This document shows positions 1,713-46,317 of a stretch of 64,000 nt of DNA, in pieces. Where the stretch lies: contig NW_025963813.1 in assembly GCF_023055435.1 (NCBI RefSeq), positions 5,518,001-5,582,000 of the forward strand. The letters are read 5' to 3'. A program made the position numbers and the translations under genes. Position 1 is the stretch's first letter, and every line of letters starts with the position of its first letter. The DNA is from Haliotis rufescens. Lineage: Eukaryota. The notes under the pieces were generated by a model that ran no database searches, was not told the DNA's origin, and saw only the letters and a program-made list of their open reading frames with translations.

Positions 1713-1788
1713 TGGCTGATACTATCTTGAATTTGGTTGTACTTGAAGGAAATATAAGCCAAGAGAAAATTACAATATACATGGCAGT

Positions 1789-1794
1789 TTTATT
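1789..1794 (-). terminator. Polyadenylation signal AATAAA of the Gly/His gene (repeated in every unit)
   Basis: Plus-strand tttatt lies ~113 nt past the stop codon and is conserved in all copies. Confidence 0.7.
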
Positions 1795-1906
1795 TGTGCT
1801 CGTTGAGGAATATACAGCTTTGGTCGATGCAGCATGGCGAGTGGAATCGACAAACATGATATCAAATGTCCAGCATTTGATGTGAATATGATGATACTTG
1901 AATGTT

Positions 1907-2544
1907 TTAACCGTGGTGTCCGCCTCCATGACCACCACCTCCATGGCCACCTCCGTGACCGCCACCGTGGCCTCCTCCATGACCTCCACCGTGACCTCCT
2001 CCATGACCTCCTCCATGGCCGCCACCTCCGTGTCCTCCGCCATGACCTCCTTTGCCGCCACCGTGGCCGCCACCTCCATGGCCGCCTCCTCCGTGTCCTT
2101 TGCCACCTCCGTGGCCACCTCCTCCGTGTCCTTTGCCACCTCCGTGACCACCTCCATGACCACCTCCGTGACCACCACCATGACCTCCTCCATGGCCGCC
2201 GCCTCCATGACCACCACCGTGGCCTCCACCTCCATGACCACCACCACCATGGCCACCAAGGACGGAGCCAAGGAAGACTGTAAAGAATGTGAAGAAAAAA
2301 CAATGCATAAGTGGTCATAGATGACAGGATGCATACATACAAAATCCGTCTACCAATCCTAATAAATGTTTACATCATGGTAGAAACTATCCTGATCATA
2401 ACGTTGTCAGTATTATCGTAAAGCCATTTAAAACTCAGCAATAGCTCATAAAGTTGATTATTAGAAAGCTTGGGAATGCGAATTCGCATCAGATAAGGCA
2501 AACGTACCCAAGACTACAACAACTGCAACATTAAGAAGGCGCAT
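1907..2544 (-). CDS. Secreted Gly/His-rich protein, copy 1 (exons 2544-2508 and 2277-1907; 135 aa)
   Basis: Exon 1 ATG CGC CTT CTT AAT GTT GCA GTT GTT GTA GTC TTG G|gtacgt; 230-nt intron; acceptor ttttttcttcacattctttacag|TC. The phase-1 join gives MRLLNVAVVVVLVFLGSVLG-GHGGGGH...GGGHHG*. 37+371=408 nt. TATA upstream, AATAAA downstream. Confidence 0.93.
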
Positions 2545-2583
2545 CCTGCCAGTTACGTTTATCCACTTGAGAATAAACGATTT

Positions 2584-2739
2584 GAATGTCGCTATTGTGA
2601 TTCACCACACCTTATATACTTGTGGTTCAGGAAATCAGGATGTTGAATGTAAATGCCCTCATTGGAAGATTTCGAAAAGAAAATTCCAAGCGACTTTTTA
2701 CACCCTGAGAGCGTGAAGAGTGAATCTTTATTATGTAAT
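2584..2739 (-). promoter_or_regulatory. Core promoter of the Gly/His gene (repeated in every unit)
   Basis: Minus-strand TATATAAG at 2618-2611; Inr-like ACATTC with its A at 2587, 31 nt downstream of the TATA; CCAAT at 2665-2661 (~-78); bZIP-type TTATGTAA at 2731-2738. Confidence 0.7.
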
Positions 2740-4975
2740 ATCACATGGGACGGTGTCACCCGCCTCTCTATTTTATGCATATCTTCCTGCATAATTATAA
2801 AAATCAAGCTGTGTATTTGTGACCTAACCTGGCACCCAGTGGCTAGCTCACTGCTGGGAAGCATGATAGATTTAACTGTTCATCCAATGCAATTTCAAGC
2901 TACAGATGATTAGTGAGAAAAAAAATGAATGGAGAGAGAATTTATAAATGAATGACAAATGTTGAACTCCAGTATTTCGTTGAGTGCATGTATTGAGTCT
3001 AGTAGGCTGCCATTACTATGGGTCCAGGAGGTTTATCAACCTATGTCAAATGCGTGTTTTAAAGCAAAATGTTATGGGAAGGTCATTATTCCTTTCTTTA
3101 AATGAAACTTGATGTGAAGAGGGAAATGTTCAAGTTTGAGATATAATTTCAAAGTTTGAATTCCTACTTTTATAATCTCAAAGCCACATTATCTTCTATA
3201 ATAAAACAAACTTCTTCTTTTTCTGTAACTAGCAAATCTTAAATTGCCGTTCAGGTAGCGCAACAATTACCAAAAATATCCAAACTGCTTTAATGAAAAC
3301 GAACTTCATCTTATTTTCAAAAGAACTGATAATATCAATATTTATCATGATATGAACCCGGAAGTAGACACAGCTTTGTCTTGGCTAAACCGTCCTTAGT
3401 AGGCGTACGGATAAAAAACAAACGAGCAGGGTGTAACTGTGAGTTAGTGTTAGAGTGTGTGTCTGCGTTGTGGTCTGGAACTGGGTCTGTGTTTGAGTGT
3501 GAAAGTCCGGGCCACATTTAACTTGGTAACTGGCCCAAACCATATTTTTATAGATTGTCGTAAAATCTCAGCTTTCCACATCACATGTGGACATGATATA
3601 CTAATCCATCAGACGAATACCTGATGTAACCACTATTTCCGCAGGAACATGTATGCGGTGGTGGTGGTACAACTAACGATCTATGACCCATGTATGACCC
3701 CCTTCCAGCCTTACCTGCCCACACCCATCAACAAAACTCCACCACCGGAGTTGAACATTCATCTGGCCTCAAAGCACAATGATTTTCCTTCTTTGCTATC
3801 TGCAGTGACATGTCAACCCACATTAATTAATATCGTTCATAGGCTGTTCTTCTGTTGCATGACTAACCTGTCACTTATAACTTACACCGCAAACTACCAG
3901 CCTGGGTCCAGCAGCTCGATTTCCAAGTAACCACTGTCAACAATGGTCAGTGGAAGTATCGAGCCTAAACACACAGATCGACCTTTAAACTGGGGGTCAA
4001 ATCATGGAAAGCTGGAGTCAATATCATGTACTCATTTGGGATCAAAGCAAATTATCAAGAAAATACAATGTCGAATCTCATGTCAAGCAAAACATATCTG
4101 GCCCAGACTCAACAAACCATCGAACAGAGCACTACATTCTCCTCTTTACCTTCCGGATCATGGTAAAACTTAAGGGACGTAACTGTGGTCTGAGGCCATC
4201 TGAGAGGGAATCTGCTTCCTTGAAGATTCATATTGCGCTGGATTCTTGAAAAGAACAAACAAATTTGGACTTGTTTTTTTGTGTGGGCTTTTCTAGAAAT
4301 CTTGTTGTTTTATTGGACATCTGCTCTACCTTATAAGGCCTTAATGTTATCATCACCCCATGGGTGCACTTTTTTAGTTTGAACTTTCGCACGGCTGTAA
4401 TTATAAAGTAGGTGGGCGTTTAGAGGCCGTAATGACAGTATGATACTAAAAGGGGACTCCGTGCATTTTCGGACAGAAATTGTCCACTTGCTTGGTTCAA
4501 CATGTTTATAGGTTTACTCATCTGCCTTCGAGCTTCAGGACCTTTGTGGACAATGATTCTAATGTGACAATCACTGTGCAGGACATTGAAAAGTAAGCAG
4601 TGGAACTACAATTAACTACTTTTATAACAAACACGCTTATAACGAACTGACGGATATAAAGTATTGCCCTTAGGTCCCGGGCTTTTGCTACATATATCCT
4701 GTATATGTGCTTATAATGAACTACGGTTATAACGAACTAAAATATGTGGTCTCTTTGAGTTCGTTATGACCGTGGTTTACTGTGGCTGATACTATCTTGA
4801 ATTTGGTTGTACTTGAAGGAAATATAAGCCAAGAGAAAATTACAATATACATGGCAGTTTTATTTGTGCTCGTTGAGGAATATACAGCTTTGGTCGATGC
4901 AGAATGGCGAGTGGAATCGACAAACATGATATCAAATGTCCAGCATTTGATGTGAATATGATGATACTTGAATGT

Positions 4976-5580
4976 TTAACCGTGGTGTCCGCCTCCATGA
5001 CCACCACCTCCATGGCCACCTCCGTGACCGCCACCGTGGCCTCCTCCATGACCTCCACCGTGACCTCCTCCATGACCTCCTCCATGGCCGCCACCTCCGT
5101 GTCCTCCGCCATGACCTCCTTTGCCGCCACCGTGGCCGCCACCTCCATGGCCGCCTCCTCCGTGTCCTTTGCCACCTCCGTGACCACCTCCATGACCACC
5201 TCCGTGACCACCACCATGACCTCCTCCATGGCCGCCGCCTCCATGACCACCACCGTGGCCTCCACCTCCATGACCACCACCACCATGGCCACCAAGGACG
5301 GAGCCAAGGAAGACTGTAAAGAATGTGAAGAAAAAACAATGCATAAGTGGTCATAGATGACAGGATGCATACATACAAAATCCGTCTACCAATCCTAATA
5401 AATGTTTACATCATGGTAGAAACTATCCTGATCATAACGTTGTCAGTATTATCGTAAAGCCATTTAAAACTCAGCAATAGCTCATAAAGTTGATTATTAG
5501 AAAGCTTGGGAATGCGAATTCGCATCAGATAAGGCAAACGTACCCAAGACTACAACAACTGCAACATTAAGAAGGCGCAT
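4976..5580 (-). CDS. Secreted Gly/His-rich protein, copy 2 (exons 5580-5544, 5313-4976; 124 aa)
   Basis: Same splice signals as copy 1. An in-frame 33-bp deletion removes one GGGKGHGGGGH module. Confidence 0.92.
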
Positions 5581-8029
5581 CCTGCCAGTTACGTTTATCC
5601 ACTTGAGAATAAACGATTTGAATGTCGCTATTGTGATTCACCACACCTTATATACTTGTGGTTCAGGAAATCAGGATGTTGAATGTAAATGCCCTCATTG
5701 GAAGATTTCGAAAAGAAAATTCCAAGCGACTTTTTACACCCTGAGAGCGTGAAGAGTGAATCTTTATTATGTAATATCACATGGGACGGTGTCACCTGCC
5801 TCTCTATTTTATGCATATCTTCCTGCATAATTATAAAAATCAAGCTGTGTATTTGTGACCTAACCTGGCACCAAGTGGCTAGCTCACTGCTGGGAAGCAT
5901 GATAGATTTAACTGTTCATCCAATGCAATTTCAAGCTACAGATGATTAGTGAGAAAAAAAATGAATGGAGAGAGAATTTATAAATGAATGACAAATGTTG
6001 AACTCCAGTATTTCGTTGAGTGCATGTATTGAGTCTAGTAGGCTACCATTACTATGGGTCCAGGAGGTTCATCAACCTATGTCAAATGCGTGTTTTAAAG
6101 CAAAATGTTATGGGAAGGTCATTATTCCTTTCTTCATAATGAAACTTGATGTGAAGAGGGAAATGTTCAAGTTTGAGATATATTTTCAAAGTTTGAATTC
6201 CTACTTTTATAATCTCAAAGCCACATTATCTTCTATAATAAAACAAACTTCTTCTTTTTCTGTAACTAGCAAATCTTAAATTGCCGTTCAGGTAGCGCAA
6301 CAATTACCAAAAATATCCAAACTGCTTTAATGAAAACGAACTTCATCTTATTTTCAAAAGAACTGATAATATCAATATTTATCATGATATGAACCCGGAA
6401 GTAGACACAGCTTTGTCTTGGCTAAACCGTCCTTAGTAGGCGTATGGATAAAAAACAAACGAGCAGGGTGTAACTGTGAGTTAGTGTTAGAGTGTGTGTC
6501 TGCGTTGTGGTCTGGAACTGGGTCTGTGTTTGAGTGTGAAAGTCCGGGCCACATTTAACTTGGTAACTGGCCCAAACCATATTTTTATAGATTGTCGTAA
6601 AATCTCAGCTCTCCACATCACATGTGGACATGATATACTAATCCATCAGACGAATACCTGATGTAACCACTATTTCCCCAGGAACATGTATGCGGTGGTG
6701 GTGGTACAACTAACGATCTATGACCCATGTATGACCCCCTTCCAGCCTTACCTGCCCACACTCATCAACAAAACTCCACCACCGGAGTTGAACATTCATC
6801 TGGCCTCAAAGCACAATGATTTTCCTTCTTTGCTATCTGCAGTGACATGTCAACCCACATTAATTAATATCGTTCATAGGCTGTTCTTCTGTTGCATGAC
6901 TAACCTGTCACTTACAACTTACACCGCAAACTACCAGCCTGGGTCCAGCAGCTCGATTTCCAAATAACCACTGTCAACAATGGTCAGTGGAAGTATCGAG
7001 CCTAAACACACAGATCGACCTTTAAACTGGGGGTCAAATCATGGAAAGCTGGAGTCAATATCATGTACTCATTTGGGATCAAAACAAATTATCAAGAAAA
7101 TACAATGTCGAATCTCATGTCAAGCAAAACATATCTGGCCCAGACTCAACAAACCATCGAACAGAGCACTACGTTCTCCTCTTTACCTTCCGGGTCATGG
7201 TAAAACTTAAGGGACGTAACTGTGGTCTGAGGCCATCTGAGAGGGAATCTGCTTCCTTGAAGATTCATATTGCGCTGGATTCTTGAAAAGAACAAACAAA
7301 TTTGGACTTGTTTTTTTGTGTAGGCTTTTCTAGAAATCTTGTTGTTTTATTGGACATCTGCTCTACCTTATAAGGCCTTAATGTTATCGTCACCCCATGG
7401 GTGCATTGAGTCACACGTGTCACTTTTTTAGTTTGAACATTCGCACGGCTTTAATTATAAAGTAGGTGGGCGTTTAGAGGCCGTAATGACAGTATGATAC
7501 TAAAAGGGGACTCCGTGCATTTTCGGACAGAAATTGTCCACTTGCTTGGTTCAACATGTTTATAGGTTTACTCATCTGCCTTCGAGCTTCAGGACCTTTG
7601 TGGACAATGATTCTAATGTGACAATCACTGTGCAGGACATTGAAAAGTAAGCAGTGGAACTACAATTAACTACTTTTATAACGAACACGCTTATAACGAA
7701 CTGACGGATATAAAGTATTGCCCTTAGGTCCCGGGCTTTTGCTACATATATCCTGTATATGTGCTTATAATGAACTACGGTTATAACGAACTAAAATATG
7801 TGGTCTCTTTGAGTTCGTTATGACCGTGGTTTACTGTGGCTGATACTATCTTGAATTTGGTTGTACTTGAAGAAAATATAAGCCAAGAGAAAATTACAAT
7901 ATACATGGCAGTTTTATTTGTGCTCGTTGAGGAATATACAGCTTTGGTCGATGCAGCATGGCGAGTGGAATCGACAAACATGATATCAAATGTCCAGCAT
8001 TTGATGTGAATATGATGATACTTGAATGT

Positions 8030-8667
8030 TTAACCGTGGTGTCCGCCTCCATGACCACCACCTCCATGGCCACCTCCGTGACCGCCACCGTGGCCTCCTC
8101 CATGACCTCCACCGTGACCTCCTCCATGACCTCCTCCATGGCCGCCACCTCCGTGTCCTCCGCCATGACCTCCTTTGCCGCCACCGTGGCCGCCACCTCC
8201 ATGGCCGCCTCCTCCGTGTCCTTTGCCACCTCCGTGGCCACCTCCTCCGTGTCCTTTGCCACCTCCGTGACCACCTCCATGACCACCTCCGTGACCACCA
8301 CCATGACCTCCTCCATGGCCGCCGCCTCCATGACCACCACCGTGGCCTCCACCTCCATGACCACCACCACCATGGCCACCAAGGACGGAGCCAAGGAAGA
8401 CTGTAAAGAATGTGAAGAAAAAACAATGCATAAGTGGTCATAGATGACAGGATGCATACATACAAAATCCGTCTACCAATCCTAATAAATGTTTACATCA
8501 TGGTAGAAACTATCCTGATCATAACGTTGTCAGTATTATCGTAAAGCCATTTAAAACTCAGCAATAGCTCATAAAGTTGATTATTAGAAAGCTTGGGAAT
8601 GCGAATTCGCATCAGATAAGGCAGACGTACCCAAGACTACAACAACTGCAACATTAAGAAGGCGCAT
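8030..8667 (-). CDS. Secreted Gly/His-rich protein, copy 3 (exons 8667-8631, 8400-8030; 135 aa)
   Basis: Intact ATG, GT-AG intron and stop; protein identical to copy 1. Confidence 0.92.
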
Positions 8668-11117
8668 CCTGCCAGTTACGTTTATCCACTTGAGAATAAA
8701 CGATTTGAATGTCGCTATTGTGATTCACCACACCTTATATACTTGTGGTTCAGGAAATCAGGATGTTGAATGTAAATGCCCTCATTGGAAGATTTTCGAA
8801 AAGAAAATTCCAAGCGACTTTTTACACCCTGAGAGCGTGAAGAGTGAATCTTTATTATGTAATATCACATGGGACGGTGTCACCTGCCTCTCTATTTTAT
8901 GCATATCTTCCTGCATAATTATAAAAATCAAGCTGTGTATTTGTGACCTAACCTGGCACCCAGTGGCTAGCTCACTGCTGGGAAGCATGATAGATTTAAC
9001 TGTTCATCCAATGCAATTTCAAGCTACAGATGATTAGTGAGAAAAAAAATGAATGGAGAGAGAATTTATAAATGAATGACAAATGTTGAACTCCAGTATT
9101 TCGTTGAGTGCATGTATTGAGTCTAGTAGGCTGCCATTACTATGGGTCCAGGAGGTTTATCAACCTATGTCAAATGCGTGTTTTAAAGCAAAATGTTATG
9201 GGAAGGTCATTATTCCTTTCTTCATAATGAAACTTGATGTGAAGAGGGAAATGTTCAAGTTTGAGATATATTTTCAAAGTTTGAATTCCTACTTTTATAA
9301 TCTCAAAGCCACATTATCTTCTATAATAAAACAAACTTCTTCTTTTTCTGTAACTAGCAAATCTTAAATTGCCGTTCAGGTAGCGCAACAATTACCAAAA
9401 ATATCCAAACTGCTTTAATGAAAACGAACTTCATCTTATTTTCAAAAGAACTGATAATATCAATATTTATCATGATATGAACCCGGAAGTAGACACAGCT
9501 TTGTCTTGGCTAAACCGTCCTTAGTAGGCGTACGGATAAAAAACAAACGAGCAGGGTGTAACTGTGAGTTAGTGTTAGAGTGTGTGTCTGCGTTTTGGTC
9601 TGGAACTGGGTCTGTGTTTGAGTGTGAAAGTCCGGGCCACATTTAACTTGGTAACTGGCCCAAACCATATTTTTATAGATTGTCGTAAAATCTCAGCTCT
9701 CCACATCACATGTGGACATGATATACTAATCCATCAGACGAATACCTGATGTAACCACTATTTCCCCAGGAACATGTATGCGGTGGTGGTGGTACAACTA
9801 ACGATCTATGACCCATGTATGACCCCCTTCCAGCCTTACCTGCCCACACTCATCAACAAAACTCCACCACCGGAGTTGAACATTCATCTGGCCTCAAAGC
9901 ACAATGATTTTCCTTCTTTGCTATCTGCAGTGACATGTCAACCCACATTAATTAATATCGTTCATAGGCTGTTCTTCTGTTGCATGACTAACCTGTCAGT
10001 TACAACTTACACCGCAAACTACCAGCCTGGGTCCAGCAGCTCGATTTCCAAATAACCACTGTCAACAATGGTCAGTGGAAGTATCGAGCCTAAACACACA
10101 GATCGACCTTTAAACTGGGGGTCAAATCATGGAAAGCTGGAGTCAATATCATGTACTCATTTGGGATCAAAACAAATTATCAAGAAAATACAATGTCGAA
10201 TCTCATGTCAAGCAAAACATATCTGGCCCAGACTCAACAAACCATCGAACAGAGCACTACGTTCTCCTCTTTACCTTCCTGGTCATGGTAAAACTTAAGG
10301 GACGTAACTGTGGTCTGAGGCCATCTGAGAGGGAATCTGCTTCCTTGAAGATTCATATTGCGCTGGATTCTTGAAAAGAACAAACAAATTTGGACTTGTT
10401 TTTGTGTGTAGGCTTTTCTAGAAATCTTGTTGTTTTATTAGACATCTGCTCTACCTTATAAGGCCTTAATGTTATCGTCACCCCATGGGTGCATTGAGTC
10501 ACACGTGTCACTTTTTTAGTTTGATCATTCGCACGGCTTAAATTATAAAGTAGGTGGGCGTTTAGAGGCCGTAATGACAGTATGATACTAAAAGGGGACT
10601 CCGTGCATTTTCGGACAGAAATTGTCCACTTGCTTGGTTCAACATGTTTATAGGTTTACTCATCTGCCTTCGAGCTTCAGGACCTTTGTGGACAATGATT
10701 CTAATGTGACAATCACTGTGCAGGACATTGAAAAGTAAGCAGTGGAACTACAATTAACTACTTTTATAACAAACACGCTTATAACGAACTGACGGATATA
10801 AAGTATTGCCCTTAGGTCCCGGACTTTTGCTACATATATCCTGTATATGTGCTTATAATGAACTACGGTTATAACGAACTAAAATATGTGGTCTCTTTGA
10901 GTTCGTTATGACCGTGGTTTACTGTGGCTGATACTATCTTGAATTTGGTTGTACTTGAAGGAAATATAAGCCAAGAGAAAATTACAATATACATGGCAGT
11001 TTTATTTGTGCTCGTTGAGGAATATACAGCTTTGGTCGATGCAGCATGGCGAGTGGAATCGACAAACATGATATCAAATGTCCAGCATTTGATGTGAATA
11101 TGATGATACTTGAATGT

Positions 11118-11755
11118 TTAACCGTGGTGTCCGCCTCCATGACCACCACCTCCATGGCCACCTCCGTGACCGCCACCGTGGCCTCCTCCATGACCTCCAC
11201 CGTGACCTCCTCCATGACCTCCTCCATGGCCGCCACCTCCGTGTCCTCCGCCATGACCTCCTTTGCCGCCACCGTGGCCGCCACCTCCATGGCCACCTCC
11301 TCCGTGTCCTTTGCCACCTCCGTGGCCACCTCCTCCGTGTCCTTTGCCACCTCCGTGACCACCTCCATGACCACCTCCGTGACCACCACCATGACCTCCT
11401 CCATGGCCGCCGCCTCCATGACCACCACCGTGGCCTCCACCTCCATGACCACCACCACCATGGCCACCAAGGACGGAGCCAAGGAAGACTGTAAAGAATG
11501 TGAAGAAAAAACAATGCATAAGTGGTCATAGATGACAGGATGCATACATACAAAATCCGTCTACCAATCCTAATAAATGTTTACATCATGGTAGAAACTA
11601 TCCTGATCATAACGTTGTCAGTATTATCGTAAAGCCATTTAAAACTCAGCAATAGCTCATAAAGTTGATTATTAGAAAGCTTGGGAATGCGAATTCGCAT
11701 CAGATAAGGCAAACGTACCCAAGACTACAACAACTGCAACATTAAGAAGGCGCAT
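11118..11755 (-). CDS. Secreted Gly/His-rich protein, copy 4 (exons 11755-11719, 11488-11118; 135 aa)
   Basis: Intact; one synonymous GGC>GGT change versus copy 1. Confidence 0.92.
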
Positions 11756-14205
11756 CCTGCCAGTTACGTTTATCCACTTGAGAATAAACGATTTGAATGT
11801 CGCTATTGTGATTCACCACACCTTATATACTTGTGGTTCAGGAAATCAGGATGTTGAATGTAAATGCCCTCATTGGAATATTTTCGAAAAGAAAATTCCA
11901 AGCGACTTTTTACACCCTGAGAGCGTGAAGAGTGAATCTTTATTATGTAATATCACATGGGACGGTGTCACCTGCCTCTCTATTTTATGCATATCTTCCT
12001 GCATAATTATAAAAATCAAGCTGTGTATTTGTGACCTAACCTGGCACCCAGTGGCTAGCTCACTGCTGGGAAGCACGATAGATTTAACTGTTCATCCAAT
12101 GCAATTTCAAGCTACAGATGATTAGTGAGAAAAAAAATGAATGGAGAGAGAATTTATAAATGAATGACAAATGTTGAACTCCAGTATTTCGTTGAGTGCA
12201 TGTATTGAGTCTAGTAGGCTGCCATTACTATGGGTCCAGGAGGTTTATCAACCTATGTCAAATGCGTGTTTTAAAGCAAAATGTTATGGGAAGGTCATTA
12301 TTCCTTTCTTCATAATGAAACTTGATGTGAAGAGGGAAATGTTCAAGTTTGAGATATATTTTCAAAGTTTGAATTCCTACTTTTATAATCTCAAAGCCAC
12401 ATTATCTTCTATAATAAAACAAACTTCTTCTTTTTCTGTAACTAGCAAATCTTAAATTGCCGTTCAGGTAGCGCAACAATTACCAAAAATATCCAAACTG
12501 CTTTAATGAAAACGAACTTCATCTTATTTTCAAAAGAACTGATAATATCAATATTTATCATGATATGAACCCGGAAGTAGACACAGCTTTGTCTTGGCTA
12601 AACCGTCCTTAGTAGGCGTATGGATAAAAAACAAACGAGCAGGGTGTAACTGTGAGTTAGTGTTAGAGTGTGTGTCTGCGTTGTGGTCTGGAACTGGGTC
12701 TGTGTTTGAGTGTGAAAGTCCGGGCCACATTTAACTTGGTAACTGGCCCAAACCATATTTTTATAGATTGTCGTAAAATCTCAGCTCTCCACATCACATG
12801 TGGACAGGATATACTAATCCATCAGACGAATACCTGATGTAACCACTATTTCCCCAGGAACATGTATGCGGTGGTGGTGGTACAACTAACGATCTATGAC
12901 CCATGTATGACCCCCTTCCAGCCTTACCTGCCCACACTCATCAACAAAACTCCACCACCGGAGTTGAACATTCATCTGGCCTCAAAGCACAATGATTTTC
13001 CTTCTTTGCTATCTGCAGTGACATGTCAACCCACATTAATTAATATCGTTCATAGGCTGTTCTTCTGTTGCATGACTAACCTGTCAGTTACAACTTACAC
13101 CGCAAACTACCAGCCTGGGTCCAGCAGCTCGATTTCCAAATAACCACTGTCAACAATGGTCAGTGGAAGTATCGAGCCTAAACACACAGATCGACCTTTA
13201 AACTGGGGGTCAAATCATGGAAAGCTGGAGTCAATATCATGTACTCATTTGGGATCAAAACAAATTATCAAGAAAATACAATGTCGAATCTCATGTCAAG
13301 CAAAACATATCTGGCCCAGACTCAACAAACCATCGAACAGAGCACTACGTTCTCCTCTTTACCTTCCGGGTCATGGTAAAACTTAAGGGACGTAACTGTG
13401 GTCTGAGGCCATCTGAGAGGGAATCTGCTTCCTTGAAGATTCATATTGCGCTGGATTCTTGAAAAGAACAAACAAATTTGGACTTGTTTTTTTGTGTAGG
13501 CTTTTCTAGAAATCTTGTTGTTATATTAGACATCTGCTCTACCTTATAAGGCCTTAATGTTATCATCACCCCATGGGTGCATTGAGTCACACGTGTCACT
13601 TTTTTAGTTTGAACATTCGCACGGCTTTAATTATAAAGTAGGTGGGCGTTTAGAGGCCGTAATGACAGTATGATACTAAAAGGGGACTCCGTGCATTTTC
13701 GGACAGAAATTGTCCACTTGCTTGGTTCAACATGTTTATAGGTTTACTCATCTGCCTTCGAGCTTCAGGACCTTTGTGGACAATGATTCTAATGTGACAA
13801 TCACTGTGCAGGACATTGAAAAGTAAGCAGTGGAACTACAATTAACTACTTTTATAACAAACAGGCTTATAACGAACTGACGGATATAAAGTATTGCCCT
13901 TAGGTCCCGGGCTTTTGCTACATATATCCTGTATATGTGCTTATAATGAATTACGGTTATAACGAACTAAAATATGTGGTCTCTTTGAGTTTGTTATGAC
14001 CGTGGTTTACTGTGGCTGATACTATCTTGAATTTGGTTGTACTTGAAGAAAATATAAGCCAAGAGAAAATTACAATATACATGGCAGTTTTATTTGTGCT
14101 CGTTGAGGAATATACAGCTTTGGTCGATGCAGCATGGCGAGTGGAATCGACAAACATGATATCAAATGTCCAGCATTTGATGTGAATATGATGATACTTG
14201 AATGT

Positions 14206-20382: not shown

Positions 20383-21020
20383 TTAACCGTGGTGTCCGCC
20401 TCCATGACCACCACCTCCATGGCCACCTCCGTGACCGCCACCGTGGCCTCCTCCATGACCTCCACCGTGACCTCCTCCATGACCTCCTCCATGGCCGCCA
20501 CCTCCGTGTCCTCCGCCATGACCTCCTTTGCCGCCACCGTGGCCGCCACCTCCATGGCCACCTCCTCCGTGTCCTTTGCCACCTCCGTGGCCACCTCCTC
20601 CGTGTCCTTTGCCACCTCCGTGACCACCTCCATGACCACCTCCGTGACCACCACCATGACCTCCTCCATGGCCGCCGCCTCCATGACCACCACCGTGGCC
20701 TCCACCTCCATGACCACCACCACCATGGCCACCAAGGACGGAGCCAAGGAAGACTGTAAAGAATGTGAAGAAAAAACAATGCATAAGTGGTCATAGATGA
20801 CAGGATGCATACATACTAAATCCGTCTACCAATCCTAATAAATGTTTACATCATGGTAGAAACTATCCTGATCATAACGTTGTCAGTATTATCGTAAAGC
20901 CATTTAAAACTCAGCAATAGCTCATAAAGTTGATTATTAGAAAGCTTGGGAATGCGAATTCGCATCAGATAAGGCAAACGTACCCAAGACTACAACAACT
21001 GCAACATTAAGAAGGCGCAT
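20383..21020 (-). CDS. Secreted Gly/His-rich protein, copy 7 (exons 21020-20984, 20753-20383; 135 aa)
   Basis: Intact ATG, splice sites and stop. Confidence 0.92.
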
Positions 21021-23471
21021 CCTGCCAGTTACGTTTATCCACTTGAGAATAAACGATTTGAATGTCGCTATTGTGATTCACCACACCTTATATACTTGTG
21101 GTTCAGGAAATCAGGATGTTGAATGTAAATGCCCTCATTGGAAGATTTCGAAAAGAAAATTCCAAGCGACTTTTTACACCCTGAGAGCGTGAAGAGTGAA
21201 TCTTTATTATGTAATATCACATGGGACGGTGTCACCTGCCTCTCTATTTTATGCATATCTTCCTGCATAATTATAAAAATCAAGCTGTGTATTTGTGACC
21301 TAACCTGGCACCCAGTGGCTAGCTCACTGCTGGGAAGCATGATAGATTTAACTGTTCATCCAATGCAATTTCAAGCTACAGATGATTAGTGAGAAAAAAA
21401 ATGAATGGAGAGAGAATTTATAAATGAATGACAAATGTTGAACTCCAGTATTTCGTTGAGTGCATGTATTGAGTCTAGTAGGCTACCATTACTATGGGTC
21501 CAGGAGGTTTATCAACCTATGTCAAATGCGTGTTTTAAAGCAAAATGTTATGGGAAGGTCATTATTCCTTTCTTCATAATGAAACTTGATGTGAAGAGGG
21601 AAATGTTCAAGTTTGAGATATATTTTCAAAGTTTGAATTCCTACTTTTATAATCTCAAAGCCACATTATCTTCTATAATAAAACAAACTTCTTCTTTTTC
21701 TGTAACTAGCAAATCTTAAATTGCCGTTCAGGTAGCGCAACAATTACCAAAAATATCCAAACTGCTTTAATGAAAACGAACTTCATCTTATTTTCAAAAG
21801 AACTGATAATATCAATATTTATCATGATATGAACCCGGAAGTAGACACAGCTTTGTCTTGGCTAAACCGTCCTTAGTAGGCGTACGGATAAAAAAACAAA
21901 CGAGCAGGGTGTAACTGTGAGTTAGTGTTAGAGTGTGTGTCTGCGTTTTGGTCTGGAACTGGGTCTGTGTTTGAGTGTGAAAGTCCGGGCCACATTTAAC
22001 TTGGTAACTGGCCCAAACCATATTTTTATAGATTGTCGTAAAATCTCAGCTCTCCACATCACATGTGGACATGATATACTAATCCATCAGACGAATACCT
22101 GATGTAACCACTATTTCCCCAGGAACATGTATGCGGTGGTGGTGGTACAACTAACGATCTATGACCCATGTATGACCCCCTTCCAGCCTTACCTGCCCAC
22201 ACCCATCAACAAAACTCCACCACCGGAGTTGAACATTCATCTGGCCTCAAAGCACAATGATTTTCCTTCTTTGCTATCTGCAGTGACATGTCAACCCACA
22301 TTAATTAATATCGTTCATAGGCTGTTCTTCTGTTGCATGACTAACCTGTCACTTACAACTTACACCGCAAACTACCAGCCTGGATCCAGCAGCTCGATTT
22401 CCAAGTAACCACTGTCAACAATGGTCAGTGGAAGTATCGAGCCTAAACACACAGATCGACCTTTAAACTGGGGGTCAAATCATGGAAAGCTGGAGTCAAT
22501 ATCATGTACTCATTTGGGATCAAAACAAATTATCAAGAAAATACAATGTCGAATCTCATGTCAAGCAAAACATATCTGGCCCAGACTCAACAAACCATTC
22601 GAACAGAGCACTACGTTCTCCTCTTTACCTTCCGGGTCATGGTAAAACTTAAGGGACGTAACTGTGGTCTGAGGCCATCTGAGAGGGAATCTGCTTCCTT
22701 GAAGATTCATATTGCGCTGGATTCTTGAAAAGAACAAACAAATTTGGACTTGTTTTTTTGTGTGGGCTTTTCTAGAAATCTTGTTGTTTTATTGGACATC
22801 TGCTCTACCTTATAAGGCCTTAATGTTATCATCACCCCATGGGTGCATTGAGTCACACGTGTCACTTTTTTAGTTTGACCATTCGCACGGCTGTAATTAT
22901 AAAGTAGGTGGGCGTTTAGAGGCCGTAATGACAGTATGATACTAAAAGGGGACTCCGTGCATTTTCGGACAGAAATTGTCCACTTGCTTGGTTCAACATG
23001 TTTATAGGTTTACTCATCTGCCTTCGAGCTTCAGGACCTTTGTGGACAATGATTCTAATGTGACAATCACTGTGCAGGACATTGAAAAGTAAGCAGTGGA
23101 ACTACAATTAACTACTTTTATAACAAACACGCTTATAACGAACTGACGGATATAAAGTATTGCCCTTAGGTCCCGGACTTTTGCTACATATATCCTGTAT
23201 ATGTGCTTATAATGAACTACGGTTATAACGAACTAAAATATGTGGTCTCTTTGAGTTCGTTATGACCGTGGTTTACTGTGGCTGATACTATCTTGAATTT
23301 GGTTGTACTTGAAGAAAATATAAGCCAAGAGAAAATTACAATATACATGGCAGTTTTATTTGTGCTCGTTGAGGAATATACAGCTTTGGTCGATGCAGCA
23401 TGGCGAGTGGAATCGACAAACATGATATCAAATGTCCAGCATTTGATGTGAATATGATGATACTTGAATGT

Positions 23472-24109
23472 TTAACCGTGGTGTCCGCCTCCATGACCAC
23501 CACCTCCATGGCCACCTCCGTGACCACCACCGTGGCCTCCTCCATGACCTCCACCGTGACCTCCTCCATGACCTCCTCCATGGCCGCCACCTCCGTGTCC
23601 TCCGCCATGACCTCCTTTGCCGCCACCGTGGCCGCCACCTCCATGGCCGCCTCCTCCGTGTCCTTTGCCACCTCCGTGGCCACCTCCTCCGTGTCCTTTG
23701 CCACCTCCGTGACCACCTCCATGACCACCTCCGTGACCACCACCATGACCTCCTCCATGGCCGCCGCCTCCATGACCACCACCGTGGCCTCCACCTCCAT
23801 GACCACCACCACCATGGCCACCAAGGACGGAGCCAAGGAAGACTGTAAAGAATGTGAGGAAAAAACAATGCATAAGTGGTCATAGATGACAGGATGCATA
23901 CATACAAAATCCGTCTACCAATCCTAATAAATGTTTACAACATGGTAGAAACTATCCTGATCATAACGTTGTCAGTATTATCGTAAAGCCATTTAAAACT
24001 CAGCAATAGCTCATAAAGTTGATTATTAGAAAGCTTGGGAATGCGAATTCGCATCAGATAAGGCAAACGTACCCAAGACTACAACAACTGCAACATTAAG
24101 AAGGCGCAT
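23472..24109 (-). CDS. Secreted Gly/His-rich protein, copy 8 (exons 24109-24073, 23842-23472; 135 aa)
   Basis: Intact. The F>L change seen in the ORF track lies in the intron's pyrimidine tract; coding changes are synonymous. Confidence 0.92.
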
Positions 24110-26561
24110 CCTGCCAGTTACGTTTATCCACTTGAGAATAAACGATTTGAATGTCGCTATTGTGATTCACCACACCTTATATACTTGTGGTTCAGGAAAT
24201 CAGGATGTTGAATGTAAATGCCCTCATTGGAAGATTTTCGAAAAGAAAATTCCAAGCGACTTTTTACACCCTGAGAGCGTGAAGAGTGAATCTTTATTAT
24301 GTAATATCACATGGGACGGTGTCACCTGCCTCTCTATTTTATGCATATCTTTCTGCATAATTATAAAAATCAAGCTGTTTATTTGTGACCTAACCTGGCA
24401 CCCAGTGGCTAGCTCACTGCTGGGAAGCATGATAGATTTAACTGTTCATCCAATGCAATTCAAGCTACAGATGATTAGTGAGAAAAAAAATGAATGGAGA
24501 GGGAATTTATAAATGAATGACAAATGTTGAACTCCAGTATTTCGTTGAGTGCATGTATTGAGTCTAGTAGGCTACCATTACTATGGGTCCAGGAGGTTTA
24601 TCAACCTATGTCAAATGCGTGTTTTAAAGCAAAATGTTATGGGAAGGTCATTATTCCTTTCTTCATAATGAAACTTGATGTGAAGAGGGAAATGTTCAAG
24701 TTTGAGATATAATTTCAAAGTTTGAATTCCTACTTTTATAATCTCAAAGCCACATTATCTTCTATAATAAAACAAACTTCTTCTTTTCCTGTAACTAGCA
24801 AATCTTAAATTGCCGTTCAGGTAGCGCAACAAATACCAAAAATATCCAAACTGCTTTAATGAAAACGAACTTCATCTTATTTTCAAAAGAACTGATAATA
24901 TCAATATTTATCATGATATGAACCCGGAAGTAGACAAAGCTTTGTCTTGGCTACACCGTCCTCAGTAGGCGTAGGGATAAAAAACAAACGAGCAGGGTGT
25001 AACTGTGAGTTAGTGTTAGTGTGTGTGTCTGCGTTTTGGTCTGGAACTGGGTCTGTGTTTGAGTGTGAAAGTCCGGGCCACATTTAACTTGGTAACTGGC
25101 CCAAACCATATTTTTATAGATTGTCGTAAAATCTCAACTCTCCACATCACATGTGGACATGATATACTAATCCATCAGACGAATACCTGATGTAACCACT
25201 ATTTCCCCAGGAACATGTATGCGGTGGTGGTGGTACAACTCACGATCTATGACCCATGTATGACCCCCTTCCAGCCTTACCTGCCCACACCCACCAAAAA
25301 AAACTCCACCACCGGAGTTGAACATTCATCTGGCCTCAAAGCACAATGATTTTCCTTCTTTGCTATCTGCAGTGACATGTCAACCCACATTAATTAATAT
25401 CGTTCATAGGCTGTTCTTCTGTTGGATGACTAACCTGTCACTTATAACTTACACCGCAAACTACCAGCCTGGATCCAGCAGCTCGATTTCCAAATAACCA
25501 CTGTCAACAATGGTCAGTGGAAGTATCGAGCCTAAACACACAGATCGACCTTTAAACTGGGGGTCAAATCATGGAAAGCTGGAGTCAATATAATGTACTC
25601 ATTTGGGATCAAAACAAATTATCAAGAAAATACAATGTCGAATCTCATGTCAAGCAAAACATATCTGGCCCAGACTCAACAAACCATTCGAACAGAGCAC
25701 TACATTCTCCTCTTTACCTTCCGGATCATGGTAAAACTTAAGGGACGTAACTGTGGTCTGAGGCCATCTGAGAGGGAATCTGCTTCCTTGAAGATTCATA
25801 TTGCGCTGGATTCTTGAAAAGAACAAACAAATTTGGACTTGTTTTTTTGTGCGGGCTTTTCTAGAAATCTTGTTGTTTTATTGGACATCTGCTCTACCTT
25901 ATAAGGCCTTAATGTTATCATCACCCCATGGGTGCATTGAGTCACACGTGTCACTTTTTTAGTTTGACCATTCGCACGGCTGTAATTATAAAGTAGGTTG
26001 GCGTTTAGAGGCCGTAATGACAGTATGATACTAAAAGGGGACTCCGTGCATTTTCGGACAGAAATTGTCCACTTGCTTGGTTCAACATGTTTATAGGTTT
26101 TCTCATCTGCCTTCGAGCTTCAGGACCTTTGTGGACAATGATTCTAATGTGACAATCACTGTGCAGGACATTGAAAAGTAAGCAGTGGAACTACAATGAA
26201 CTACTTTTATAACAAACACGCTTATAACGAACTGACGGATTTAATATATTGACCTTAGGTCCCGGGCTTTTGCTACATATATCCTGTATATGTGCTTATA
26301 ATGAACTACGGTTATAACGAACTAAAATATGTGGTCTCTTTGAGTTCGTTATGACCGTGGTTTACTGTGGCTGATACTATCTTGAATTTGGTTGTACTTG
26401 AAGAAAATATAAGCCAAGAGAAAATTACAATATACATGGCAGTTTTATTTGTGCTCGTTGAGGAATATACAGCTTTGGTCGATGCAGCATGGCGAGTTGA
26501 ATCGACAAACATGATATCAAAATTCCAACATTTGATGTGAATATGATGATACTTGAATGTT

Positions 26562-27199
26562 TTAACCGTGGTGTCCGCCTCCATGACCACCACCTCCATG
26601 GCCACCTCCGTGACCGCCACCGTGGCCTCCTCCATGACCTCCACCGTGACCTCCTCCATGACCTCCTCCATGGCCGCCACCTCCGTGTCCTCCGCCATGA
26701 CCTCCTTTGCCGCCACCGTGGCCGCCACCTCCATGGCCACCTCCTCCGTGTCCTTTGCCACCTCCGTGGCCACCTCCTCCGTGTCCTTTGCCACCTCCGT
26801 GACCACCTCCATGACCACCTCCGTGACCACCACCATGACCTCCTCCATGGCCGCCGCCTCCATGACCACCACCGTGGCCTCCACCTCCATGACCACCACC
26901 ACCATGGCCACCAAGGACGGAGCCAAGGAAGACTGTAAAGAATGTGAAGAAAAAACAATGCATAAGTGGTCATAGATGACAGGATGCATACATACAAAAT
27001 CCGTCTACCAATCCTAATAAATGTTTACATCATGGTAGAAACTATCCTGATCATAACGTTGTCAGTATTTTCGTAAAGCCATTTAAAACTCAGCAATAGC
27101 TCATAAAGTTGATTATTAGAAAGCTTGGGAATGCGAATTCGCATCAGATAAGGCAAACGTACCCAAGACTACAACAACTGCAACATTAAGAAGGCGCAT
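26562..27199 (-). CDS. Secreted Gly/His-rich protein, copy 9 (exons 27199-27163, 26932-26562; 135 aa)
   Basis: Intact ATG, splice sites and stop. Confidence 0.92.
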
Positions 27200-29651
27200 C
27201 CTGCCAGTTACGTTTATCCACTTGAGAATAAACGATTTGAATGTCGCTATTGTGATTCACCACACCTTATATACTTGTGGTTCAGGAAATCAGGATGTTG
27301 AATGTAAATGCCCTCATTGGAAGATTTTCGAAAAGAAAATTCCAAGCGACTTTTTAAACCCTCAGACCGTGAAGAATTAATCTTTATTATGTAATATCAC
27401 ATGGGACGGTGTCACCTGCCTCTCTATTTTATGCATATCTTCCTGCATAATTATAAAAATCAAGCTGTGTATTTGTGACCTAACCTGGCACCCAGTGGCT
27501 AGCTCACTGCTGGGAAGCATGATAGATTTAACTGTTCATCCAATGCAATTTCAAACTACAGATGATTAGTGAGAAAAAAAATGAATGGAGAGAGAATTTA
27601 TAAATGAATGACAAATGTTGAACTCCAGTATTTCGTTGAGTGCATGTATTGAGTCTAGTAGGCTACCATTACTATGGGTCCAGAAGGTTTATCAACCTAT
27701 GTCAAATGCGTGTTTTAAAGCAAAATGTTATGGGAAGGTCATTATTCCTTTCTTCATAATGAAACTTGATGTGAAGAGGGAAATGTTCAAGTTTGAGATA
27801 TATTTTCAAAGTTTGAATTCCTACTTTTATAATCTCAAAGCCACATTATCTTCTATAATAAAACAAACTTCTTCTTTTTCTGTAACTAGCAAATCTTAAA
27901 TTGCCGTTCAGGTAGCGCAACAATTACCAAAAATATCCAAACTGCTTTAATGAAAACGAACTTCATCTTATTTTCAAAAGAACTGATAATATTAATATTT
28001 ATCATGATATGAACCCGGAAGTAGACACAGCTTTGTCTTGGCTACACCGTCCTTAGTAGGCGTAGGGATAAAAAACAAACGAGCAGGGTGTAACTGTGAG
28101 TTAGTGTTAGAGTGTGTGTCTGCGTTTTGGTCTGGAACTGGGTCTGTGTTTGAGTGTGAAAGTCCGGGCCACATTTAACTTGGTAACTGGCCCAGACCAT
28201 ATTTTTATAGATTGTCGTAAAATCTCAGCTCTCCACATCACATGTGGACATGATATACTAATCCATCAGACGAATACCTGATGTAACCACTATTTCCGCA
28301 GGAACATGTATGCGGTGGTGGTGGTACAACTAACGATCTATGACCCATGTATGACCCCCTTCCAGCCTTACCTGCCCACACCCACCAACAAAACTCCACC
28401 ACCGGAGTTGAACATTCATCTGGCCTCAAAGCACAATGATTTTCCTTCTTTGCTATCTGCAGTGACATGTCAACCCACATTAATTAATATCGTTCATAGG
28501 CTGTTCTCCCGTTGCATGACTAACCTGTCACTTATAACTTACACCGCAAACTACCAGCCTGGGTCCAGCAGCTCGATTTCCAAGTAACCACTGTCAACAA
28601 TGGTCAGTGGAAGTATCGAGCCTAAACACACAGATCGACCTTTAAACTGGGGGTCAAATCATGGAAAGCTGGAGTCAATATCATGTACTCATTTGGGATC
28701 AAAACAAATTATCAAGAAAATACAATGTCGAATCTCATGTCAAGCAAAACATATCTGGCCCAGACTCAACAAACCATTCGAACAGAGCACTACATTCTCC
28801 TCTTTACCTTCCGGATCATGGTAAAACTTAAGGGACGTAACTGTGGTCTGAGGCCATCTGAGAGGGAATCTGCTTCCTTGAAGATTCATATTGCGCTGGA
28901 TTCTTGAAAAGAACAAACAGATTTGGACTTGTTTTTGTGTGTGGGCTTTTCTAGAAATCTTGTTGTATTATTGGACATCTGCTCTACCTTATACGGCCTT
29001 AATGTTATCATCACCCCATGGGTGCATTGAGTCACATGTGTCACCTTTTTAGTTTGAATATTCGCACGGCTGTAATCATAAAGTAGGTTGGCGTTTAGAG
29101 GCCGTAATGACAGTATAATACTAAAAGGGGACTCCGTGCATTTTCGGACAGAAGTTGTCCACTTGCTTGGTTCAACATGTTTATAGGTTTACTCATCTGC
29201 CTTCGAGCTTCCGGACCTTTGTGGACAATGCTTCTAATGTGACAAACACTGTGCAGGACATTGAAAAGTAAGCAGTGGAACTACAGTAAACTACTTTTAT
29301 AACGAACACGCTTATAACGAACTGACGGATATAAAGTATTGCCCTTAGGTCCCGGGCATTTGCTACATATATCCTGTATATGTGCTTATAATGAACTACG
29401 GTTATAACGAACTAAAATATGTGGTCTCTTTGAGTTCGTTATGACCGTGGTTTACTGTGGCTGATACTATCTTGAATTTGGTTGTACTTGAAGAAAATAT
29501 AAGCCAAGAGAAAATTACAATATACATGGCAGTTTTATTTGTGCTCGTTGAGGAATATACAGCTTTGGTCGATGCAGCATGGCGAGTGGAATCGACAAAC
29601 ATGAAATTAAATGTCCAGCATTTGATGTGAATATGATGATACTTGAATGTT

Positions 29652-30301
29652 TTAACCGTGGTGTCCGCCTCCATGACCACCACCTCCATGGCCACCTCCG
29701 TGACCGCCACCGTGGCCTCCTCCATGACCTCCACCGTGACCTCCTCCATGACCTCCTCCATGACCTCCTCCATGGCCGCCACCTCCGTGTCCTCCGCCAT
29801 GACCTCCTTTGCCGCCACCGTGGCCGCCACCTCCATGGCCACCTCCTCCGTGTCCTTTGCCACCTCCGTGGCCACCTCCTCCGTGTCCTTTGCCACCTCC
29901 GTGACCACCTCCATGACCACCTCCGTGACCACCACCATGACCTCCTCCATGGCCGCCGCCTCCATGACCACTACCGTGGCCTCCACCTCCATGACCACCA
30001 CCACCATGGCCACCAAGGACGGAGCCAAGGCAGACTGTAAAGAACGTGAAGAAAAAACAATGCATAAGTGGTCATAGATGACAGGATGCATACATACAAA
30101 ATCCGTCTACCAATCCTAATAAATGTTTACATCATGGTAGAAACTATCCTGATCATAACGTTGTCAGAATTATCATAAAGCCATTTAAAACTCAGCAATG
30201 GCTCATAAAGTTGATTATTAGAAAGCTTGGGAATGCGAGTTCGCATCAGATAAGGCAAACGTACCCAAGACTACAACAACTGCAACATTAAGAAGGCGCA
30301 T
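29652..30301 (-). CDS. Secreted Gly/His-rich protein, copy 10 (exons 30301-30265, 30034-29652; 139 aa, most divergent)
   Basis: In-frame 12-bp GGGH insertion, one Gly>Ser change and Phe>Cys in the signal peptide; splice sites intact. Confidence 0.9.
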
Positions 30302-32783
30302 CCTGCCAGTTACGTTTATCCACTTGAGAATAAACGATTTGAATGTCGCTATTGTGATTCACCACACCTTATATACTTGTGGTTCAGGAAATCAGGATGT
30401 TGAATGTAAATGCCCTCATTGGAAGATTTTCGAAAAGAAAATTCCAAGCGACTTTTTACACCCTGAGAGCGTGAAGAGTGAATCTTTATTATGTAATATC
30501 ACATGGGACGGTGTCACCTGCCTCTCTATTTTATGCATATCTTCCTGCATAATTATAAAAATCAAGCTGTGTATTTGTGACCTAACCTGGCACCCAGTGG
30601 CTAGCTCACTGCTGGGAAGCATGATAGATTTAACTGTTCATCCAATGCAATTTCAAGCTACAGATGATTAGTGAGAAAAAAAATGAATGGAGAGAGAATT
30701 TATAAATGAATGACAAATGTTGAACTCCAGTATTTCGTTGAGTGCATGTATTGAGTCTAGTAGGCTGCCATTACTATGGGTCCAGGAGGTTTATCAACCT
30801 ATGTCAAATGCGTGTTTTAAAGCAAAATGTTATGGGAAGGTCATTATTCCTTTCTTCATAATGAAACTTGATGTGAAGAGGGAAATGTTCAAGTTCAGAT
30901 ATATTTTCAAAGTTTGAATTCCTACTTTTATAATCTCAAAGCCACATTATCTTCTATAATAAAACAAACTTCTTCTTTTTCTGTAACTAGCAAATCTTAA
31001 ATTGCCGTTCAGGTAGTGCAACAATTACCAAAAATATCCAAACTGCTTTAATGAAAACGAACTTCATCTTATTTTCAAAAGAACTGATAATATCAATATT
31101 TATCATGATATGAACCCGGAAGTTGACACAGCTTTGTCTTGGCTACACCGTCCTTAGTAGGCGTAGGGATAAAAAACAAACGAGCAGGGTGTAACTGTGA
31201 GTTAGTGTTAGTGTGTGTGTCTGCGTTTTGGTCTGGAACTGGGTCTGTGTTTGAGTGTGAAAGTCCGGGCCACATTTAACTTGGTAACTGGCCCAAACCA
31301 TATTTTAATAGATTGTCGTAAAATCTCAGCTCTCCACATCACACGTGGACATGATATACTAATCCATCAGACGAATACCTGATGTAACCACTATTTCCGC
31401 AGGAACATGTATGCCGTGGTCGTGGTACAACTAACGATCTATGTCCCATGTATGACCCCCTTCCAGCCTTACCTGCCCACACCCACCAACAAAACTCCAC
31501 CACCGGAGTTGAACATTCATCTGGCCTCAAAGCACAATGATTTTCCTTCTTTGCTATCTGCAGTGACATGTCAACCCACATTAATTAATATCGTTCATAC
31601 GCTGTTCTCCTGTTGCATGACTAACCTGTCACTTATAACTTACACCGCAAACTACCAGCCTGGATCCAGCAGCTCGATTTTCAAGTAACCACTGTCAACA
31701 ATGGTCAGTGGAAGTATCGAGCCTAAACACACAGATCGACCTTTAAACTGGGGGTCAAATCATGGAAAGCTGGAGTCAATATCATGTACTCATTTGGGAT
31801 CAAAACAAATTATCAAGAAAATACAATGTCGAATCTCATGTCAAGCAAAACATATCTGGCCCAGACTCAACAAACCATTCGAACAGAGCACTACATTCTC
31901 CTCTTTACCTTCCGGATCATGGTAAAACTTAAGGGACGTAACTGTGGTCTGAGGCCATCTGAGAGGGAATCTGCTTCCTTGAAGATTCATATTGCGCTGG
32001 ATTCTTGAAAAGAACAAACAGATTTGGACTTGTTTTTGTGTGTGGGCTTTTCTAGAAATCTTGTTGTTTTATTGGACATCTGCTCTACCTTATACGGCCT
32101 TAATGTTATCATCACCCCATGGGTGCATTGAGTCACACGTGTCACCTTTTTAGTTTGAATATTCGCACGGCTGTAATCATAAAGTAGGTTGGCGTTTAGA
32201 GGCCGTAATGACAGTATGATACTAAAAGGGGACTCCGTGCATTTTCGGACAGAAATTGTCCACTTGCTTGGTTCAACATGTTTATAGGTTTTCTCATCTG
32301 CCTTCGAGCTTCCGGGCCTTTGTGGACAATGATTCTAATGTGACAATCACTCTGCAGGACATTGAAAGGTAAGCAGTGGAACTACAGTAAGCTATTGGAT
32401 TCTTGAAACGAAGAAACAGATTTGGACTTTTTTTTGTGTGGGCTTTTCTAGAAAGCCTGTTGTATTATTAAAGATCTCCTCTACCGTATAAGTCCTTAAT
32501 GTTATCATCATAAGATAGAGAGATCGAGTGAGAGAGAATAATATAGTGTAAAATCGTTATAGCAGATTAGGGAAGATAGATACTAGTTACTGTACTTTAT
32601 CGGAGTCAGTATATCGAGCGCTCACTGCGTTATCAGCTGATCAAGGTTCATACCTCAAACACAGCTGGCAAACATCCCTCTGTCATTTTCACGTAAACAT
32701 GCTCCGTATCCCAGCTTCTCTACTACTTGTTGTGTTCCTGAGGTGAGTTCGTCCGCTGGGCTTGAACGTTGGGCAGTTTGGTG

Positions 32784-41246: not shown

Positions 41247-41278
<32 letters not shown>

Positions 41279-46265: not shown

Positions 46266-46317
<52 letters not shown>

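Follow-up and report, generated by a model that had tools for sequence, protein, structure and literature searches.

A tandem array of genes for a putative secreted protein rich in glycine and histidine from Haliotis rufescens

The stretch of DNA analysed here, 64,000 nucleotides (nt) of the abalone Haliotis rufescens (assembly GCF_023055435.1, contig NW_025963813.1, positions 5,518,001 to 5,582,000 of the forward strand) and hereafter called the window, carries a tandem array of small genes whose predicted product is a secreted chain made almost wholly of glycine and histidine. Self-BLAST of one 3,088-base-pair (bp) unit against the window and 100 kb of its left flank places ten head-to-tail units at window positions 1..32386, on the minus strand. 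The window opens mid-unit, and the full array runs from window -58486 (negative positions lying in the left flank) to +32386, which makes 29 units over ~91 kb. Intact genes, called type A below, are present in 29/29 array units, and an identical protein of 135 amino acids (aa) is encoded by 19 of the 29; the copy at window -3596 (locus L001) is the sole one that lacks the AATAAA hexamer after its stop. An earlier note on this DNA had claimed a tandem amplification of at least ten intact genes. The ten window genes were reproduced with their coordinates and counts, and the amplification is upheld by a 29-unit array with concerted evolution; the number given was nevertheless an undercount, the array holding 29 units with 29 intact genes.

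Each gene is read from the minus strand and is composed of a 37-nt exon 1, a 230-nt GT-AG intron with the donor GTACGT and a long pyrimidine tract followed by a CAG acceptor, and an exon 2 ending in TAA, with the junction in phase 1; the ATG stands at the higher-numbered end of each gene. In copy 1 (1907..2544, 135 aa), exon 1 occupies 2544-2508, the intron 2507-2278 and exon 2, including the stop, 2277-1907. Its promoter (2545..2900, minus), repeated in every unit, has the TATA element TATATAAG at -74 and a CCAAT-like box near -120, and its 3' untranslated region (UTR; 1789..1906, minus) has AATAAA 113 nt after the stop. Copy 2 (4976..5580; exon 1 5580-5544, exon 2 5313-4976) bears an in-frame deletion, with a product of 124 aa and the composition G78 H24 K2. 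The next seven copies each encode 135 aa: copy 3 (8030..8667; exon 1 8667-8631, exon 2 8400-8030), copy 4 (11118..11755; exon 1 11755-11719, exon 2 11488-11118), copy 5 (14206..14843; exon 1 14843-14807, exon 2 14576-14206), copy 6 (17295..17932; exon 1 17932-17896, exon 2 17665-17295), copy 7 (20383..21020; exon 1 21020-20984, exon 2 20753-20383), copy 8 (23472..24109; exon 1 24109-24073, exon 2 23842-23472) and copy 9 (26562..27199; exon 1 27199-27163, exon 2 26932-26562). Copy 10 (29652..30301; exon 1 30301-30265, exon 2 30034-29652) has an in-frame insertion and encodes 139 aa, one of them Ser.

The lengths of the window products, 135 aa in 8/10 copies, 124 aa in one and 139 aa in one, thus change in frame only, and the TATA element at -74 of the ATG, a purine at -3, the TAA stop and the AATAAA signal 112-113 nt past it are kept in 10/10 copies. 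These results bear out several details of the earlier note, such as the conservation of the TATA box, ATG, GT-AG borders, stop and polyadenylation signal in all ten copies and the restriction of coding insertions and deletions to in-frame ones. The 2508/2277 junction of the first copy, with its 37-nt exon and 230-nt intron in phase, is exact as claimed, and the start at MHCFFF, proposed by the open reading frame (ORF) track and considered intronic in the note, does sit within the pyrimidine tract of the intron.

The spliced type A model encodes a 20-aa leader and a mature chain of about 115 aa comprising 86 Gly, 26 His and 3 Lys, with a His at every 4-5 residues, and so reproduces the signal peptide and the chain composition that had been put forward. 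The leader is built of MR, a 13-residue hydrophobic core and GSVLG, with small residues at -1 and -3, and was assigned by inspection as a signal peptide, from which secretion of the product is predicted. Gly and His account for 74.8% and 22.6% of the type A chain, and for 80.6% and 19.4% of the chain of a sister type, type B, located on other contigs. The Gly runs of the mature chain are 3-5 long (6 around one Lys), Asp, Glu, Tyr and Ala are missing from the consensus chain, as is any aromatic residue, and the type A mature chain contains 24 HGGG and 22 GGH motifs. The calculated mature mass is 8,875 Da for type A and 6,765 Da for type B; the calculated net charge falls from +28.7 at pH 4.5 to +2.8 at pH 8.1 for type A and from about +18 to about 0 between the same values for type B. 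The mature chain is predicted to be structureless, AlphaFold2 having returned a mean predicted local distance difference test (pLDDT) score of 44.8 and zero secondary structure, as expected for a disordered chain. The C-terminus GHGGGHHG is common to both types, and their terminal Gly would allow C-terminal amidation. From zero to three tryptic sites are found in the chain. The Lys-directed processing suggested by the earlier note is weakened by the sister type, whose 75 copies have no Lys at all, and is not a feature of the family.

The units of array A differ from one another by a mean substitution divergence of 0.86%, which climbs with distance, and the most divergent units stand at the edge, two right-edge units reaching 1.5-1.8%. 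Two recent block duplications, one of three units and one of two, have partners 0-0.2% apart. Because of these block duplications and the distance-dependent divergence, unequal crossing-over appears to be ongoing, keeping the copies near-identical and still adding blocks. The contrast between 0.86% within array A and ~18% between types A and B in the gene is that of concerted evolution, and the head-to-tail units, each with a complete promoter-to-poly(A) gene, have the organisation of a dosage array.

The type B arrays, of about 75 copies together, lie at C47:372006-475393 (plus) and C246:6042482-6146994 (minus) (loci L011-L014 and L018-L021). Their 2.77-kb unit is homologous to the window unit along its whole length, with an identity of ~82% in the gene and of roughly 80% elsewhere where alignable. 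The exon-1 peptide is the same as in type A, the donor is GTAAGT, and the mature chain is purely Gly and His, typically G75 H18, and Lys-free. All 29 type A copies and 24 of the about 75 type B copies were read, the remaining type B copies being known from pattern counts, and the gene model is intact in 23/24 of the type B copies read. Their introns measure 230, 232, 236, 238, 240 or 242 nt through a GT/TG dinucleotide repeat, and the spliced frame is always kept (e.g. L012:6983-7218). Both type B arrays reach contig ends, so that the assembly breaks inside them; they could represent two haplotypes, or else a single array cut in two during assembly. The array-edge copy at C246:6042221-6042521 (minus, L018), with its acceptor changed from AG to AT, a shortened chain and one Asn, is likely a pseudogene at the array margin. 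A lone exon 1 with an intact GTAAGT donor at C47:215900-215939 (minus, L015), ~156 kb from the type B array, was considered as a divergent paralogue and rejected, no plausible exon 2 being found downstream; it is regarded as a relic. The decay is thus confined to the margins, with this orphan exon 1 and the one AG-to-AT acceptor.

A pattern search of the 1.33-Gb assembly gave 105 sites genome-wide for the exon-1 sequence (29 on C35, the contig of the window, 39 on C47 and 37 on C246, with 0 matches for the reversed control) and 104 occurrences of the exon-2 start (..L-G-G-H-G-G-G), and by these counts the two-type family is put at a predicted total of 104 complete genes. A third set, type C, was revealed by the coding motif H-G-G-G-K-G-H-G-G, written in other codons and spaced at ~3.05 kb, with at least 66 units: 35 matches at C35:41104574-41214026 (plus), up to the contig end, 31 from C45:1685 onward (plus), and a solitary one at C35:40528940 (minus). 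The exon-1 pattern gives no match at this set, which is probably a further array of Gly/His/Lys genes, known from the pattern hits alone.

All six frames are open across the repeat, and an open frame alone therefore proves nothing. Only the Gly/His frame is connected to a signal peptide, by splice signals that are both canonical and conserved. Between types A and B, exon 1 has one synonymous difference in 37 nt, the intron is about 82% identical and of variable length, and the promoter and the 3' UTR are the best-conserved parts of the unit, the promoter blocks at 86-91% out to about -350 and the 3' UTR at 91%, above the spacer. Among the aligned coding codons, 69 are identical, 40 differ synonymously and 2 non-synonymously; the A-B alignment inside the repeat is arbitrary, and the argument from composition is independent of it. 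When neutral drift was simulated at 10%, ~26 residues other than Gly and His were expected, frequently together with a stop, against 0 in type B and only three Lys in type A. The Gly codons are a mixture of GGT, GGA and GGC, with GGG at 0/86 in type A and 0/75 in type B, and His is split between CAT and CAC; the protein is thus far more regular than the DNA, the third codon positions being mixed while the residues stay Gly or His. The absence of GGG limits the G runs to two bases, perhaps as a way of avoiding G-quadruplexes or slippage. Owing to the splice link to the signal peptide, the conservation of exon 1, the synonymous bias and the conserved promoter and 3' UTR, the Gly/His frame is taken as the coding one, and the copies are, on the evidence of the sequence, very probably functional protein-coding genes under purifying selection. 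An antisense Ser/Thr/Met-rich ORF was also considered and rejected, its start and frame not being conserved between types A and B, and two alternative sense frames were rejected for starts and frames that differ between the types.

The homology search with the exon-2 peptide scored 8000 candidates, of which none passed, and neither a Pfam match nor, even at E=10, a match among PDB sequences was obtained; all of these searches rest on HMMER and cannot see chains of such a composition. For the same peptide nothing usable came from the ESM Atlas, which is equally uninformative on such sequences. The blank database searches therefore say nothing on novelty, the composition correction blinding these tools. 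The unspliced ORFs of both types were absent in an exact look-up of the collection, and no relevant feature came out of the Rfam and tRNA scans of the window. In the full-text literature searched, including a survey of material proteins rich in Gly and studies of the abalone shell proteome, no description of such a protein was found for abalone or any mollusc; the proteomics of those studies would miss a chain with zero to three tryptic sites.

As His is the sole functional side chain of the protein, its action would proceed via imidazole chemistry, that is, protonation near pH 6-6.5 and the coordination of Cu, Zn or Ni, and from the hundred-plus homogenised copies we infer bulk production. 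The reading that we prefer, and hold tentatively, is that the chain is the precursor, switched by pH and metal, of a protein-based material or a secretion; it is favoured by the polychaete jaw proteins, which are the closest by composition. According to this scheme, a secretory epithelium would make the chain in bulk, and in the acidity of the secretory granules the chain would stay dissolved as a polycation with a charge of about +25 to +29. At the pH of sea water or haemolymph the charge would be nearly lost (about +3, and about 0 in the Lys-free sister type), and the freed imidazoles could then coordinate Cu2+ or Zn2+, so that the chain condenses or cross-links. It might in this way serve as the histidine component of the jaw, radula, periostracum or an adhesive secretion, in the manner of the polychaete-jaw Gly/His proteins. 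It is also possible, if speculative, that a major abalone secretion has gone unrecognised and that this chain is its precursor, a near-pure Gly/His polymer encoded by >100 genes (>170 with the third array) and acting as a metal sponge or as a matrix switched by pH and metal. If so, its zero to three tryptic sites would account for its escape from proteomics, and low-complexity masking together with the 37-nt exon 1 for its escape from annotation; no simpler histidine-based material protein would then be known in nature, and no earlier one from a mollusc with a histone-like gene dosage.

Several points weigh against the preferred reading of a material or secretion precursor. The published abalone shell proteomes report no such protein, but with its 0-3 tryptic sites it would go unseen by them, and the literature search found no report of Cu- or Zn-hardened tools in Haliotis. 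The chain, with no Asp, Glu, Tyr or Ala and with its runs of 3-5 Gly, is unlike the jaw proteins MTP (multi-tasking protein) and Nvjp-1. Slippage of the 12/15-nt periodic repeat could help to give both the in-frame insertions and deletions and the pure composition, and more than a hundred copies seem excessive for so small a structure as a jaw.

The best of the alternatives, yet rather an unlikely one, is a secreted antimicrobial or antifungal effector, which, as with other defence peptides rich in Gly and His, would either starve microbes of Zn or Cu through chelation or, where infection has acidified the surroundings, attack membranes as a polycation. In composition and small size the chain agrees with shepherin I (PMC10698721) and with the mosquito salivary Gly-His-rich peptides (PMC2644710), the charge is strongly dependent on pH, and secretion is suggested by the signal peptide. 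However, the 115 aa of the chain exceed the typical members, dibasic processing sites are absent, and Lys is lacking from the 75-copy type B. Visual inspection of the conserved promoter gave no clear immune-type (NF-kB-type) motif, and the identical 100-copy arrays fit a bulk supply rather than the diversification common among mollusc defence peptides.

An extracellular carrier, store or detoxifier of metal (e.g. for the copper supply of haemocyanin), or a proton buffer for shell calcification, amplified like metallothionein or CUP1, is an unlikely explanation. Two motifs abundant in the mature chain, HGGG, which forms the core that binds Cu(II) in the prion octarepeat, and GGH, a classic Cu/Ni site at N-termini, together with a His pKa near physiological pH, would suit the handling of metal. 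Metal tolerance is known to arise by the amplification of metal-binding genes in tandem, and a gene for a copper-dependent lytic polysaccharide monooxygenase (LPMO) 13 kb from the array is suggestive only. Visual inspection of the conserved promoter gave no convincing metal-response element, however, and the known mollusc carriers, namely the mussel His-rich glycoproteins, are larger folded proteins.

That the genes have a single exon, being translated from the in-frame intronic ATG (MHCFFF.. in type A, MYCCFF.. in type B) into the same mature chain, is decidedly improbable. Both types retain the intronic ATG together with its open frame, and the resulting leader is hydrophobic and ends at the same ..LG/GH site. 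However, this leader has no positive n-region and is non-synonymous at 2/10 codons between the types, and the TATA element, the CCAAT-like box and the promoter blocks lie upstream of exon 1, not of the intronic ATG. Scanning ribosomes would reach the exon 1 ATG first, and it stands in a good context. Exon 1 is 36/37 identical between the types against about 82% for the intron, and the donor, pyrimidine tract, acceptor and phase are kept in 29/29 type A copies and in 23/24 of the type B copies read.

Finally, a non-functional satellite or dead array with a stop-free repeat, to which the six open frames and the natural yield of in-frame changes by 12/15-nt slippage would lend themselves, or a copy number inflated by an assembler that struggled where the type B and C arrays end at contig ends, is very improbable in view of the 40 synonymous against 2 non-synonymous A-B differences, the 0 foreign residues against ~26 expected, the conservation of promoter, signal exon, splice sites, stop and poly(A) signal across the family copies, the alternative and antisense frames that change start or frame between the types, the decay at edges only and, as regards inflation, the private variants of each unit and the block-duplication structure, unlikely for an assembly artefact.

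To the right of the array the window contains other features. A 136-N run at 32784-32919 lies about 400 bp past the right array end, and is followed by a tRNA-Ser(GGA)-like sequence detected by ARAGORN (33932-34003, plus) and, just past it, by a 191-bp unit repeated twice with a 98% match (34172-34559); the tRNA-like sequence and the 191-bp repeat at the array border may be a short interspersed element (SINE) or another repeat. A cathepsin-like cysteine protease of the papain family (Peptidase_C1, E 1e-15) is encoded in two exons at 41058-42351 (plus). The LPMO-like gene (Pfam LPMO_10, E 4e-11) occupies 45165-50182 (minus), about 13 kb right of the array, and from its upstream exon (49904-50182) a signal peptide and then HGY.. 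would be translated, with the His at the N-terminus that a copper 'histidine brace' is expected to have. Elsewhere in the assembly, several exons of the Egg_lysin family were found within about 300 kb at C556:27479767-27778965 (minus, loci L022-L025), and look like a cluster of lysin paralogues. One of them is identical over 47/47 aligned residues to PDB 1LIS/2LIS, and far less similar to 3LYN, and the best-scoring one carries three in-frame stops. PDB 1LIS is the sperm lysin of red abalone, and as lysin evolves fast between species, the match points to H. rufescens, or something very near it, as the source of the assembly.

Disordered proteins rich in His and Gly do the work in metal-hardened jaws, in squid beaks and among several host-defence peptides, and are used as models for bio-inspired coacervates and self-healing polymers; a natural chain near (GGGH)n would be a minimal version of that histidine chemistry. 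Selection on 100+ copies would imply that the animal needs the product in large amounts. The family also illustrates how standard annotation, homology search and tryptic proteomics can all overlook an entire set of highly amplified genes. Its tissue and role, if found, would add a new component to the biology of the abalone shell, mouthpart, mucus or immunity, in a farmed and conservation-relevant species.

As for the known systems, holotricin-3 and tenecin-3 are comparable beetle antifungals. The analogues with which the earlier note had compared the chain, such as these two, the shepherins, Nvjp-1 and the squid-beak His-rich proteins, are apt by composition and no further, homology being not assessable for such sequences. 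Like the jaw proteins and the Gly/His antimicrobials, the chain would be secreted and is dominated by Gly and His, and it appears to be a member of no named family. MTP of Glycera dibranchiata, a protein of 30 kDa with 49 mol% Gly and 40 mol% His, binds Cu and phase-separates on Cu addition (PMC9999432). Like MTP, the abalone chain is a predicted secreted and disordered protein with a signal peptide, dominated by Gly/His tri- and tetrapeptide repeats and with a little Lys; unlike MTP, in which neither Gly nor His occurs more than twice in succession and Asp, Glu and Ala are present, it strings 3-5 Gly together and lacks acidic residues. It is also smaller (6.8-8.9 kDa), with 75-81 mol% Gly and 19-23 mol% His, and belongs to another phylum, and gene amplification is not reported for MTP. 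Nvjp-1 of Nereis virens (32-40 kDa, 36 mol% Gly, 27 mol% His) has GGH and GH repeats, assembles in response to pH and Zn, and forms Zn-induced fibrils; its composition includes about 9% Asp, 6% Glu and 7% Tyr (PMC9999432). The abalone chain resembles it as a secreted, Gly/His-rich protein, and differs in having no Asp, Glu or Tyr.

Shepherin I, a plant peptide rich in Gly and His, requires Zn both to act against fungi and to form fibrils (PMC10698721), and zinc chelation has been proposed for the mosquito salivary Gly-His-rich peptides (PMC2644710). With such antimicrobials the abalone product has in common a small, predictedly secreted chain almost wholly of Gly and His; they are, however, of about 28-85 aa, often processed, encoded by single or few genes and known from plants or insects, whereas the abalone chain has 115 aa with three single, non-dibasic Lys. 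The squid beak His-rich proteins and Hydra spinalin belong to the same class of secreted, Gly/His-rich disordered precursors, the squid proteins coacervating by pH, but rely on aromatic residues (GHGxY repeats) or on further domains, while the abalone chain has no aromatics. The HGGGW site that binds Cu(II) in the prion octarepeat is absent, the HGGG core recurring 24 times per 115 residues, outside any Trp, Pro or Gln context and in a chain that has no folded domain. Dosage-amplified arrays are represented by the sea-urchin histone repeats, the fish antifreeze protein arrays and yeast CUP1. Unlike their products, that of the abalone array would be a secreted polymer of two or three kinds of residue, with high expression suggested by copy number only; like them, the abalone genes form dozens to >100 head-to-tail units of a few kb, each with a complete small gene, which unequal crossing-over would homogenise.

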